A DNA stretch of 64,000 nt, taken from positions 186,001 through 250,000 of the forward strand of contig CM074804.1 in NCBI GenBank assembly GCA_037447605.1. Direction: 5' to 3'. A program made the translations under genes and the position numbers. The notes below the pieces were generated by a model. That model did no database searches. It was not told the origin of the DNA and worked only from the letters and a program-made list of their open reading frames with translations. The number at the start of each line of letters is the position of its first letter. Position 1 is the stretch's first letter. Source of the stretch: Zygnema circumcarinatum SAG 698-1b. Lineage: Eukaryota; Plantae; Zygnematophyceae. Positions 16,826 to 42,230 of the stretch are shown piece by piece.

Positions 16826-18623
16826 AAAGTCGATGGCATGAATGACGCATGGCACGGTATTGATGCTTGGCATGCAATTAGACGCTTTTGAAGTTATGAT
16901 TTCTTAAGGAAAACTATATACCGCCCCCCTTTTTTGGTTATCCCGCCACTGTTTTTTTGAAATCCGACCCTTCCATTTCGGCTATTCTGCCCCCTGTTTT
17001 GAAATATCCCGCCCCCCCCATTTTGGATATTCCCCCCCTTTTTCTCCTTCTCACACATCAGCGCAACGTTCGTTCGAGAGAGAGAGGAAAGGAGAGTCTC
17101 TCTCCTTTGCTCTCTCCTTTGCTCTCTCCTCTAGTCTCTCTCTCCTTTGCTCTCACTCTACTCACTCTCTCTCTCTCCTTTGCTCTCTCCTCTGCTCATT
17201 CTCTCTCTCCTCCTTTGCTCTCTCCTCTGCTCTCTCTCTCTCCTCCTTGCTCTCTCCTCTCTCTCTCCTCTATACTCTCTCTCCTCGGCTCTCGCTCCTT
17301 TGCTCTCTCTCTCTCTCTCTCTCTCTTTCTCTCTCTCTCTTTCTCTCTCTCTCTCTCTTTCTCCCTTTCCTCTCTTCACCCTCCTTCTGTTTTCCTGCCT
17401 TCTCCTTTTGTTCTCACTGCCGAGAGAGAGTAGGGGAGAGAAAGACTAGAGGAGAGAGAGCAGAGGAGAGAGAGAGAGAGAAAGAGAGAGAGAGAAATAG
17501 AGAGAGAGAGAAGAGAGAGCAAGCTATCAAGCCAACCATTACATCATGACAGACCTTCACACCCACCAAAAGAAAAAGGATAAAAAGAGAATAAAAAGTT
17601 CCTAAATATAGAAAAACTCGCAAACCGAGAGGAAGAAGGGAAGGGAGGGGTGGGCAAGGGAGGGGAGGGGAGGGAAGGGGAGGGGAGGGGAGGGGAGGGG
17701 AGGGGAGGGGAGGGCAGGGAGGGAAGGGGAGGGAGGGGAGGGGCGAGGACGGGAGGGGAGGGCAGGGAAGGGGAGGGAAGGGGAGGGGGAGGGGAGGGGG
17801 GGCAGGGGAGGGGGGGGAGGGGGGAGGGGAGGGGCGAGGACGGGAGGGGAGGGAAGGGGAGGGAAGGGGAGGGGGAGGGGAGGGGGAGGGCAGGGAAGGG
17901 GAGGGGCGAGGACGGGGAGGGCAAGGGAGGGGAGGGGAGGGAGGGAGGGAGGGAGGGAGGGAAGGGGAGGGGAGGGAGGGGGAGGGGAGGGAGGGAGGGA
18001 GGGCAAGGAGGGAGGGGCGAGGACGGGAGGGAGGAGGGAGGGAGGGAGGGAGGGAAGGGGAGGGAAGGGAGGGGAGGGGAGGGGAGGGCAAGGGAGGGGA
18101 GGGCAGGGGAGGGGAAGGGAGGGGAGGGGAGGGCAAGGGAGGGGAGGGCAGGGGAGGGGAAGGGAGGGGAGGGGAGGGCAAGGGAGGGGAGGGGCTAGCG
18201 AATGGGAGGGCGGGAAAGAATATTCAAAGAAGTGTTCTCCCCAGTATTCAAATGGGGTGGGAGAAGACCTAAATGGGGAGGGTCAATTTCAAAAACAGCT
18301 GTATAACCAAAAAAGGGGGGCGGTATATAGTTCTCCTTTCTTTAAGGCAGAAGCTTTCTTGGCCCAGCCGTGGTCCAAGTTGCAAGTAACAACAAAAGAG
18401 AAGCCCTCGCACACAAAGGGAAATCACATGCACATGGCCAACAACAATAACGACAACGACAACACAGGAAACCACGAGGAACCAACTGCTCATAAGGACC
18501 CAAGGACAAAGAAATCCATGCAAAGTTCCTTGTGAGAAAGTCAAAGATAGTTACAGTTACTGTCAAAGTTGCAGTTACTACGACATGTGAGCAAGGTCCT
18601 ACGCCGTTCTTTGAAGAGTCAAA
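16826..18623 (+). repeat. ~370 bp dispersed repeat (split by the MULE at 16908-18336), paralogous to 41837-42230
   Basis: aaagtc.atggcatgaatgacgcatggcacggtattgatgctt...gaagttatgatt and cccagccgtggtc.aagttgcaagtaacaacaaaagagaagccctcgcacacaa...ttctttgaagagtcaaa are shared in direct orientation. Confidence 0.9.
16908..18336. mobile_element. Non-autonomous Mutator-like element (MULE) carrying only microsatellites
   Basis: ~55 bp TIRs GGA(A/G)AACTATATACCGCCCCC(C)TTTTTTGGTTAT...TGTTTTTGAAAT. Degenerate ~9 bp TSD (ATTTCTTAA / TTTCTTTAA). An empty site is present in the paralogous repeat at ~41905-41920. Interior is (CT)n, (GA)n and a (GGGGA)n array at 17630-18195. Confidence 0.8.
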
Positions 18624-18647
18624 AATTCATACCAATTCTGCCTGTGG

Positions 18648-18980
18648 TGGCTTAAGTTTTCTTCGGACACATCTCTTAGTCACATTCCACTCTTCTCCGC
18701 CTTTTGCAATATGATCCATAGCAGGCAGGTCACTCCCTTGACGTGGGCGGCTCAGGGGGAAGAAGAGGAGGGAGAGGAAGGGTAGCAACTATGGCCATGG
18801 GTCAGGGGCGGGTGGGAACAGCCATGAATGGAGTGGCGGTGGGAATAGCACAAGGTAGCAGTCATATGGGTGTATCCACTATGGGGAGCCTCCGTCCTAA
18901 TGCCGTGCCTCAAGTTATGCTGGCTTACCTTAAACATATGTGGTCGTTAAGAGGGTAGACCACAAGGCGACAAGCGTTTC
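18648..18980 (+). pseudogene. TOR: TOR FAT-domain fragment, inverted copy of ~50395-50766
   Basis: Translates ...MAMGQGRVGTAMNGVAVGIAQGSSHMGVSTMGSLRPNAVPQVMLAYLKHMWSLRG* versus intact TOR MAMGQVGVGAAMNGVAVGIAQGSSHMGASTMGSLRTNAVPQVMLAYLKHMWSLGG. Has a 16 nt deletion, substitutions and a stop. Confidence 0.95.
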
Positions 18981-19090
18981 AACACCACAAAGGGACTTTT
19001 ATCGTTTCTTTACATATTTGTTCTTTGAAATTAACAAACATAACGAAGAATGAAAAGAAGTGAGGGCCCAACGTTGGTCGGTGTCACCAA

Positions 19091-40270: not shown

Positions 40271-41242
40271 TTCGTCCATGGAATAGGCGGTCTTTATGGA
40301 TTACATGTATGGAAACCGTGGGGTGGCCTTGTCCCGGTCGGACTCTGGTTGACTCCCTGCACTGGAAGGTGGAACGAGGATTGAGACTATTTTTTTTTAA
40401 ATATCTGTAACATCCAACTAGGATCTCTACAAGTTTGTGCTTGCGACAAATATGGTTAAAACAGGAGCTCTTTTTATCCTAAAAAACGTAGAAAGGATCT
40501 GAACAGTGTTTACGTCAAGTCTGAGGACTCTTAGAACAGGATTGTGGTCGCTAATTGAAATAGAAATCATATACAACAGCATTAACATATTTGCTCGTAT
40601 ACGTGGCTTGACAAGGAATGTCATATTTTCCACATAATTCGATTTTTATTTGTCATTCGTTTTTTCCGCGAAAGGCTTCATCTTCTCATTGGAGAAGTTT
40701 AGAAGTTTATCTTTCACTTTGAGGAGCTCTGATCCCTTCTTTCCGTTTTGTTTTGAAAAGTAACATTCAGACTATGCAGGCTCCTTATGACACTGACAGA
40801 AACCAAAAGATAAGCCCTCAATTAAGTGAAGAAAAAGGCGGTCCATAAGCTACCTAGTACATGGTAGAGCACAAAATCTGCCAGCTGCAAATAAAAAAAC
40901 GAGCGCAGTAGTCGTTAATGTGAAAGAGGTAAAAAGGGATGGATGTCTCTCTTTCAGTGAAAGAATTTTCGTCCAACCGACCGATGCCCTGTCTGCTGCT
41001 TAGCACCAACCCTAACAGCGTAACTGAATACCAGAATGTGCATGCTTTAATCTGCCTCTCCCTGTCATTATTTATTCCACAGCGCAGCAAATGTATGTAC
41101 AGGTTCCAGCCCTTTCATCGCTGGCTGAATCTTATCACTTTCATTGAATAGCAGGCCCGATCCCTGAATTTGTGATCGCATGTAATTCCTTCTTTCTAAA
41201 ATTTTCAGTTTGTCTTCCAGGAGACCAGTCTGACCTTGGACA

Positions 41243-41460
41243 ATGGTGCGAAGTTGGGGTGCAGGCGAAGCCATCATGTTTCCAAGAGAAGTTTCGAGTC
41301 GTTGGAATGACACATATGATATGCTTGTTGCTTATTGTAAGGTGATTCAAACCGTCGAATCTGTGACTGCATTCTTCCCCAGGTCCTCGTCCTATTGGCG
41401 CAGGATCTGCAGTGGTGCAATTCCGTTCCCGGAAAAAACGTCAGTATATCCATGCTGTTA
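41243..41460 (+). mobile_element. Possible hAT-transposase-like remnant
   Basis: AIMFPREVSSRWNDTYDMLVAYCK|VLVLLAQDL resembles the hAT D.xTRWNSTYxML motif. Only this short motif supports the call. Confidence 0.35.
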
Positions 41461-41836
41461 TTATACGCAATGTCACTATAACGTGAGTAGACTGTACTTT
41501 GTAGCGGCGATAGCCGCTAGGTTCACCAACAAATGCTCCAACGATTGGCATCGGGTGGGTTGCTATCGCCAACCAATGGTTTCTGCTTCCAACCATTGCA
41601 AATGGTTGGCAATTTTTGACTAACGGCTCCAGTCTTGTATTTTTGCCACACGACACAGACCCATGTGAAGGGGCTTCGCACCCCATGAGATTACTTTCGA
41701 TCTTTTACTTTTGCATATTGAAAAAGGGTTGCGAAGGAGACTTCCGGTTCTGAGATGGTAGAGTGTGTGCGGCCCCATGTTGGGGTTGGAAATGGTGCAG
41801 TGGACATCTGTTGGTCGTGCACAACTATAAGATGGG

Positions 41837-42230
41837 AAAGTCAATGGCATGAATGACGCATGGCACGGTATTGATGCTTGCATGCAATTAGAAGCTTTTG
41901 AAGTTATGATTTTTTTAACGCAAAAGCGTTCTTGACCCAGCCGTGGTCTAAGTTGCAAGTAACAACAAAAGAGAAGCCCTCGCACACAACGGGGACGTGA
42001 ATTGGCATTGATCTCACGATGGCGATGCCATCACATGTACATGGCCAACAACCACAACGACAACATGGGGAACCACGACGAACCAACTGCTCGCAAAGGA
42101 ACTAAGGACAAAGAAATCCATGCGAAGTTTCTTGTGAGAAAGTCAAAGATAGTTACAGTTACAGTAATGTCAAAGCTGCAGTGACTGCGACATGTGAGCA
42201 AGGTTCTACGCTTTTCTTTGAAGAGTCAAA
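41837..42230 (+). repeat. Uninterrupted paralog of the 16826-18623 repeat, immediately upstream of RPP40
   Basis: See 16826-18623. Lacks the MULE insertion. Confidence 0.9.

Follow-up and report, generated by a model that had tools for sequence, protein, structure and literature searches.

Introduction

Pack-MULEs (MULE, Mutator-like element) and gene-fragment Helitrons are known to gather intron-bearing fragments of unrelated genes at a single locus. Short intron-bearing pieces from near and distant loci are also joined in patchworks produced by filler-DNA/double-strand break (DSB) repair or template switching, i.e., by synthesis-dependent strand annealing (SDSA), theta-mediated end joining, or fork stalling and template switching/microhomology-mediated break-induced replication (FoSTeS/MMBIR). 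Two further systems concern small nucleolar RNA (snoRNA) genes: in plants, a Telo-box, a Site II motif, and a TATA box are combined in the promoters of polycistronic snoRNA genes and of ribosomal-protein genes (PMC4660826), and in decaying duplicates of snoRNA host genes (UHG, GAS5-type) the snoRNA stays intact while the surrounding exons decay. All of these bear on a ~25-kb intergenic region of the alga Zygnema circumcarinatum SAG 698-1b, which was analyzed within a window of 64,000 nucleotides (NCBI GenBank assembly GCA_037447605.1, contig CM074804.1, positions 186,001 to 250,000 of the forward strand; coordinates below are those of the window). The region fills the space between two divergent genes, eIF4E (exon 1 at 14162-14530, minus strand) and RPP40 (piece at 46106-46564, plus strand), and consists of defunct fragments of genes, patched together around a satellite.

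With moderate confidence, and from sequence comparison, we favor the view that repair and duplication assembled this region piecewise at a satellite that is fragile and derived from promoters, that the satellite would also serve as a locus of the snoRNA U24, and that the whole was probably not built by a transposon. The region shares with known repair patchworks short intron-bearing pieces of near and distant origin that lie in either orientation, junctions with 0-21 bp of filler or 1-nt microhomology, and breakpoints in microsatellites. It differs from them by its larger scale (~25 kb, at least five donors), by the promoter-derived satellite and by one reused breakpoint, and it is the junctions that point to the mechanism.

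U24 Genes in a Promoter-Like Satellite

The central part of the region is occupied by two related units, A and B (Table 1), which on the minus strand read in the same order: ~1 kb of unique DNA, a CpG island, ~3.7 kb of composite satellite, and a unique module of 1.2 kb. Each unit contains a U24 gene (SNORD24, a C/D box snoRNA) that matches the covariance model of Rfam over its full length (1-76 of 76). Copy A fits the family consensus in its boxes (C, C' and D) as well as in the two rRNA guide elements, AUAUUUGCUA and CCACCAAGAUCG; copy B carries a single substitution in the D' guide (UUUGGUA for UUUGCUA). An earlier note on this DNA had reported no intact gene between eIF4E and RPP40, which agrees with the patchwork of dead gene pieces but does not extend to RNA genes, given two SNORD24 copies above the gathering score of Rfam. 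Its description of the fragments as organized around a telomere-like satellite and a CpG island holds: both features were confirmed within the 64-kb window. A coding signal was looked for in the CpG island of unit A, and none was found.

The satellite monomer contains the Telo-box AACCCTAA, followed 5-30 nt later by the Site II element TGGGCT. Pairs of the form AACCCTAA-N(5-30)-TGGGCY are almost confined to the satellite, which holds 21 of the 22 in the window; the sole pair outside it lies at 8374-8411, in the neighborhood of the eIF4E/CBE1 gene. Likewise, the nine occurrences of CTATAAAGGGGAGGGCGGAG are all on the minus strand and all within the satellite. Six TATA cassettes are found in unit A (21746, 22359, 23394, 24285, 24907, and 25484), five of which include a mini-exon and a splice donor. 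Cassettes 2-6, including the snoRNA-adjacent cassette, each have at least two Telo-box/Site II pairs 150-600 nt upstream. For the TATA box at 21765, such pairs lie 179 and 303 nt upstream, and U24 follows ~65 nt downstream, which is the layout of plant snoRNA/ribosomal-protein promoters with Telo-box and Site II. Because the order of Telo-box, Site II and TATA box matches this published layout (PMC4660826), the "telomere-like satellite" can be read, by its motif content alone, as a tandemly amplified promoter module of the snoRNA/ribosomal-protein type.

The locus thus resembles plant snoRNA genes transcribed by RNA polymerase II (Pol II) in that a C/D snoRNA stands ~65 nt after a TATA box whose upstream few hundred nt include Telo-box and Site II motifs (PMC4660826). 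It differs from these genes in that the promoter module is amplified to a multi-kb satellite with ~15 TATA cassettes, that each unit holds a single snoRNA instead of a polycistronic cluster, and that the leader is non-native (see below). Since the TATA box ~65 nt upstream of U24 is itself preceded by Telo-box/Site II modules, U24 could be produced from a Pol II precursor, as in plant snoRNA genes. We infer function of the U24 copies and promoter activity of the cassettes from these motifs.

The cassettes also carry splice-like signals. A 33-nt mini-exon ending in a perfect donor, CAG|GTAAG, is present in nine or more copies, and polypyrimidine-AG tracts resembling acceptors are found in the long cassettes and at position 20531. 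This suggests an alternative, in which the minus strand bears a snoRNA host gene: transcription would start at the TATA cassettes, the mini-exons would be spliced, U24 would be released from the last intron, and the satellite would be intronic and under selection. U24 indeed lies between a donor at 22329 and the acceptor at 20531, and RNA-like contigs cover 19.1-22.3 kb. However, not a single GT-AG joint appeared in four run assemblies, in which the contigs are colinear with the DNA, i.e., unspliced, and U24 has a TATA box of its own 65 nt upstream. Because no GT-AG joints appeared, we rank a host gene low and consider it quite improbable. A spliced leader was set aside as well, since none of the loose contig ends listed for the runs fell on a donor. 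The same point separates the region from UHG- or GAS5-type hosts: the intact snoRNA among decayed VPS51 exons is a shared trait, but evidence of splicing is missing here and the snoRNA may be driven by the adjacent TATA promoter.

The VPS51 Module and Its Junctions

The U24 gene of unit A is part of a 1,194-bp module that also comprises relic exons of VPS51. The 73-residue translation of 20691-20909 (minus strand) matches the C-terminal region of proteins of ~780 amino acids (phmmer, best E 4.5e-16 among 1.8 billion proteins), whose full-length members carry the Pfam domain VPS51_Exo84_N; the closest relatives are ~80% identical and come from other species. The VPS51 pieces were not recognized in PDB searches. 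The start of the "Q(T/S)xV.." exon and the end of the "DLLLQEV" exon coincide with exon borders in the VPS51 genes of Marchantia, Ceratodon, and Selaginella, which implies that the introns have been retained. With introns at the positions typical of the gene family and with stops and frameshifts, the pieces have the makeup of an unprocessed pseudogene.

The insertion of the module into the satellite can be read from cassettes that lack it. In the long cassettes, the empty form is TATA-leader-...GAGT-TC-GCTTCTCTTTTCAG-mini-exon, and in the cassette at 21765 the module (20527-21720) stands in place of the 2-bp TC. Contigs of the empty form, when placed on the region, give a joint from 20526 to 21721 with two letters between. 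The module ends are CTGTAGG... and ...CACTATTGT (ACAATAG... and ...CCCCTACAG on the other strand); at its junctions, neither a target-site duplication (TSD) nor terminal repeats were found, and 2 bp of filler is all that is present.

Further left, the VPS51 intron downstream of the DLLLQEV exon leads up to a third, decayed U24 copy. Two pieces overlap at U24, one running from the VPS51 intron into U24 (19091-19462) and the other, the module, from U24 into VPS51 exons. This overlap implies that the source copy had U24 inside that very VPS51 intron. In both units, homology to the third U24 copy begins 24 nt upstream of the snoRNA, which in turn implies that the TATA leader is not native to U24.

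Unit B begins exactly at the left base of the module, beside unrelated DNA, and ends in (CT)n like unit A. The two units are 94-96% identical in the unique left part, including 350 bp without any difference, and ~88% identical elsewhere. The identical stretch against a background of 88-96% suggests ongoing exchange, and we propose that sequence has been exchanged between A and B by gene conversion. At the right end of unit B, 37793-38383 is a nearly pure (CT)~297 tract, followed by (TA)n and (TC)n, for a total of more than 1.2 kb.

Other Gene Pieces and Their Donors

Two donors are local. An internal piece of TOR (88.7% identity) matches the TOR coding sequence at 50732-50397, i.e., its parent gene is 30 kb away, and it is joined through 21 bp of unrelated filler to a copy of the segment upstream of RPP40 (81-96% identity); both donors lie within 32 kb. 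By self-comparison, copies of this RPP40-upstream segment bound the whole region as direct repeats (16826-16902 plus 18337-18642 on the left, 41837-42251 on the right). The parent TOR gene (47873-55771, minus strand) is a single uninterrupted open reading frame (ORF) of ~2,630 codons among neighboring genes that have introns. Its identity is ~82% with the TOR sequences of Spirogloea, liverworts, and conifers and 87% with one transcript, which marks the window, nuclear DNA, as that of a streptophyte; its exact product was not found in a collection of 15 billion proteins, with six alternative starts tried, and the unit ORF used as a protein query gave no match in the protein collection.

Two further pieces derive from a ribulosamine/fructosamine-3-kinase and from a histidine phosphatase. 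The two exons of the kinase fragment correspond to the consecutive residues 39-73 and 72-107 of PDB 6OID (E 3.9e-10 and 5.9e-07) and keep an intron of ~314 nt between them; a motif scan found no catalytic motifs or core of the kinase anywhere in the window. The spacer that holds this fragment also contains a 106-bp direct duplication (29401-29506 vs. 30376-30481, 92%), possibly a duplicated pseudo-exon. The phosphatase is represented by its C-terminal half, and an N-terminal exon with the RHG motif was looked for upstream and not found. Overall, the missing halves of kinase and phosphatase did not turn up in Pfam and PDB searches of ~50 pieces and in motif scans. The pieces of the region lie in both orientations, and each gene is represented by just 70-125 codons.

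The inventory of fragments in the earlier note is largely confirmed. This is true for TOR, for the ribulosamine kinase, and for VPS51, for which three pieces were found (by tblastn, phmmer, and Pfam on the full-length matches) where two had been listed. What was called CA1P-phosphatase-like is the C-terminal half of a histidine phosphatase, but lacks a detectable RHG exon, and the hAT-like motif exists (RWNDTYDML at 41300), but as a short motif only and with no transposase domain. NAA40 and the probable KNL2, by contrast, were not found in Pfam and PDB searches of about 40-50 ORF-like pieces. The claim that the pieces were captured as DNA, and not as retrocopies, is supported, because introns are retained and exon borders conserved.

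Retained introns, together with many stops, frameshifts, and internal deletions, would also be expected if the pieces were the remains of a larger segmental duplicate that once held whole VPS51, kinase, phosphatase, and other genes and was then fractionated by deletions and satellite expansion. A single former copy could account for the three VPS51 pieces, which jointly span residues ~597 to the end, and direct repeats bound the region. However, the VPS51 pieces are not collinear and differ in orientation, one of them sits within a satellite cassette and has clean junctions there, and the TOR piece is an inverted, internal coding fragment of 320 bp with 21 bp of filler between it and RPP40-upstream DNA. 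The small number of codons kept per gene likewise speaks against fractionation, which we regard as rather unlikely.

Transposon Signatures

The only clear transposon in the region is a 1.4-kb MULE-like miniature inverted-repeat transposable element (MITE), which splits the left RPP40-upstream copy. Its interior consists of (TC)n, (GA)n, and G-rich 10-mers, it is flanked by a duplication of 8-9 bp, and a paralogous empty site is present in the same window at 41905-41915. Read depth at the MITE end is 160-185, vs. 7-28 nearby, and its loose ends differ, which implies many genomic copies.

It has been suggested by the earlier note that the gene pieces were collected by an undescribed pack-type element. 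More generally, a large non-autonomous transposon (Pack-MULE, Helitron, CACTA, or undescribed) could have gathered them on a backbone formed by the satellite and the CpG island. In favor of this, intron-bearing pieces of several unrelated genes lie together, MULE-like elements exist in this genome in multiple copies, and the end of the VPS51 module is sharply defined and reused in two contexts. However, the expected anatomy is absent. Outside low-complexity DNA, the stretches 14.5-20.6 kb and 37.9-43.5 kb share no inverted match of at least 13 nt that could serve as an enclosing terminal inverted repeat (TIR), and near the kinase and phosphatase pieces, scans for inverted repeats yielded just short, unconvincing pairs. 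The sole MULE-like TIR pair encloses 1.4 kb of simple repeats, and the 9-11 bp TSD of a Pack-MULE is not seen at the module, the only TSD being that of the MITE. Helitron ends (5'-TC...CTRR-3') were checked on the one module with both ends defined, and do not occur there. Neither a hammerhead nor another element-type RNA was found by a permissive Rfam search of 16-43 kb, and Pfam scans of ~50 ORF-like pieces gave no transposase, RepHel, or reverse transcriptase (RT) domain, so that a Penelope-like element or Terminon finds no counterpart here.

The absence of enclosing TIRs, Helitron ends, and a hammerhead had been noted before and is borne out by these scans. Of the related autonomous element (MuDR, RepHel, Penelope-like RT, or HUH) that the earlier note proposed to look for, the ~50 scanned pieces of the window gave no domain. 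The pieces are, moreover, on both strands and out of order, and two donors are neighbors on the same chromosome. Taken together, a pack-type transposon seems very improbable. The second option of the earlier note, a satellite-seeded repair hotspot, is a better fit to the junctions and local donors and is therefore favored, but it misses the promoter modules and the U24 genes.

Evidence From Run Assemblies

The junctions described above can be compared with assemblies of runs from other studies. Contigs of a 2025 study form a tiling path over 19.1-22.3 kb that crosses junctions and shows 0-2 differences. The X25 contig spans 19390-20775 and thereby joins the old satellite block, a VPS51 piece, the mini-exon, and the module; the X16 contig covers 19390-20455. 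Further contigs cross position 21721 (21610-21815) and join the module to the cassette. Because contigs from other runs bridge these junctions, the junctions are not an assembly artifact.

That the region might be a chimeric assembly of repeats had been raised in the earlier note as well, and satellite and microsatellite DNA is abundant in it; in addition, one contig of high depth mixes A-like, B-like, and other variants (see below). But the bridging of key junctions with 0-2 differences, and the fact that DNA-type runs contain 0.8-0.87 of the sampled words of 27600-31000, leave a chimeric assembly hardly credible.

Depth in the runs that cover the region fluctuates, two of them have no coverage at all at 18.4-19.0 kb, and the depth ratio of transposon to unique sequence varies widely. 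These properties suggest that the runs are probably RNA, although the run type is guessed. In an RNA-labeled run of 2019, the X15 contig (1,678 nt) has a mean depth of 2,927, vs. 8-12 in neighboring contigs. Over 21095-21560 it has the exact sequence of unit A, while 21561-21609 is B-like; beyond this come a variant U24, then 191 other letters, another U24, and finally 780 nt without a match to the window. U24-containing RNA of this sequence family would thus be abundant; the contig itself is either a strain variant of the locus, a related locus, or a graph chimera. The two U24 copies 191 nt apart (at 21561-21723) hint at structural variation at the strain level or at a further U24 locus.

How the Region May Have Formed

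Our proposal of a repair and duplication patchwork at an amplified promoter module can be put as a sequence of events. A core module with Telo-box (AACCCTAA) and Site II (TGGGCT), TATA box, short leader or mini-exon, and a GTAAG resembling a 5' splice site would have been amplified in tandem to the composite satellite of ~3.7 kb. End joining or template switching would then have placed unprocessed genomic pieces within this array and next to it: 1,194 bp from a VPS51-like copy with U24 in its intron, the 5' end of the ribulosamine kinase, the 3' end of the histidine phosphatase, and copies of TOR and RPP40-upstream DNA from the neighborhood. Later, the 7-kb block would have been duplicated to units A and B, with one breakpoint at the module edge and the other in (CT)n, followed by exchange between the units through gene conversion. 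The MULE-like MITE may have inserted on the left at a later time.

Several observations weigh against this scenario. The breakpoint 20526/20527 is used in three structures, which is unusual for random repair and could mark the end of a defined element. Telo-box and Site II are short motifs, and their occurrence in a telomere-like repeat could be a coincidence. The splice-like signals of the cassettes are left without an explanation, as spliced joints were not seen in the run assemblies. SNORD24 was not found in any of the four VPS51 loci that were examined (Marchantia paleacea, Sphagnum, Ceratodon, and Selaginella), although a U24-bearing VPS51 intron is part of the proposal. Finally, the run types are guesses ("RNA?" and "?"), the X15 contig mixes variants of an A-like, a B-like, and a third type and may thus be a chimera or derive from a different strain or locus, and loose contig ends place related satellite sequence in other contexts.

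The coordinates of all features are compiled in Table 1. Outside the patchwork proper, between it and the promoter side of eIF4E, lies a palindrome or foldback of 674 bp (15485-16150), which is ~90% identical to its own reverse complement.

Table 1. Features of the patchwork between eIF4E and RPP40 (positions in the 64-kb window).
Feature	Position	Strand	Remarks
RPP40-upstream segment, left copy, part 1	16826..16902	+	96% to 41837-41912
MULE-like non-autonomous transposon (MITE)	16903..18336	.	1,434 bp; ~100-bp imperfect TIRs from GGA(A/G)AACTATATACCGCCCCCCTTTTTTGG; flanking duplication TTTCTT(T)AA
RPP40-upstream segment, left copy, part 2	18337..18642	+	~81% to 41910-42251
Internal piece of neighboring intronless TOR gene, residues ~1680-1790	18664..18984	+	Inverted vs. 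parent; 88.7% over 336 bp, E 2e-110
Copy of VPS51 intron following "DLLLQEV" exon	19091..19312	+	Inverted-repeat partner of 20092-20316, 81%
Decayed 5' half of third U24 copy	19405..19462	+	C box ATGATTA; homology to units A/B from GTCTGTAGGGG onward
Older, diverged block of the composite satellite	19647..20104	.	75-79% to main arrays
VPS51 pseudo-exon, residues ~597-618, RMVVDLLLQEV	20308..20392	-	Internal 19-bp duplication and frameshift; out of order vs. other VPS51 pieces
3' splice-site-like tract, 33-nt mini-exon, GTAAG donor	20475..20530	-	Half-cassette flanking the module
1,194-bp module	20527..21720	-	24-nt leader, U24, VPS51 relic exons and intron, ~50 nt past VPS51 stop; inside one satellite cassette
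VPS51 relic exon, residues ~695 to end	20876-20577	-	tblastn
VPS51 relic exon, residues ~668-692	21372-21271	-	tblastn; two stops
SNORD24 (U24 C/D box snoRNA), copy A	21615..21698	-	Rfam, 52.1 bits, gathering score 41
Composite satellite, unit A	21746..25503	-	15-mer arrays (GGGGCAAGGCCGAGG), Telo-box and Site II modules, six TATA cassettes
CpG-rich island, unit A	25504..26450	.	~65% GC, 54-bp repeats
(CT)n tract, right breakpoint of unit A	27442..27544	.	
Ribulosamine/fructosamine-3-kinase 5' fragment	28545..29068	+	Two exons, ~28545-28646 and 28961-29068, with retained intron
Unit B	31065..37898	-	Segmental duplicate of 20527-27544 (unit A, 7 kb)
VPS51 relic, unit B copy	31421-31272	-	
SNORD24, copy B	32157..32240	-	Rfam, 49.7 bits, gathering score 41
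(CT)n, (TA)n, (TC)n microsatellites, at right breakpoint of unit B and further right	37793..39024	.	
Histidine-phosphatase C-terminal half, His_Phos_1	39803..40267	+	Profile positions 98-184 of 194, E 7e-8
RPP40-upstream segment, right copy	41837..42251	+	Direct-repeat partner of 16826-18642

Implications

Where intron-bearing gene fragments cluster, a Pack-MULE or a Helitron need not be the cause: in the present case, junction anatomy and neighboring donors point to repair and duplication. Similarly, a "telomere-like satellite" may be an amplified promoter module of the snoRNA/ribosomal-protein type. As a long shot, the cassette array may even be a recurrent landing pad, at which breaks are patched with gene pieces that then come to lie behind a strong Telo-box/Site II/TATA promoter and a splice donor; if true, this would be a route without transposons to re-house a snoRNA and to make chimeric transcripts, perhaps in use at several mosaic zones of the genome. 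Should similar mosaics recur in the genome, they would provide a natural system for how fragile repeats recruit and reshuffle gene pieces. Z. circumcarinatum itself may have an important U24 snoRNA locus in a region of fragments that had been written off as devoid of genes.

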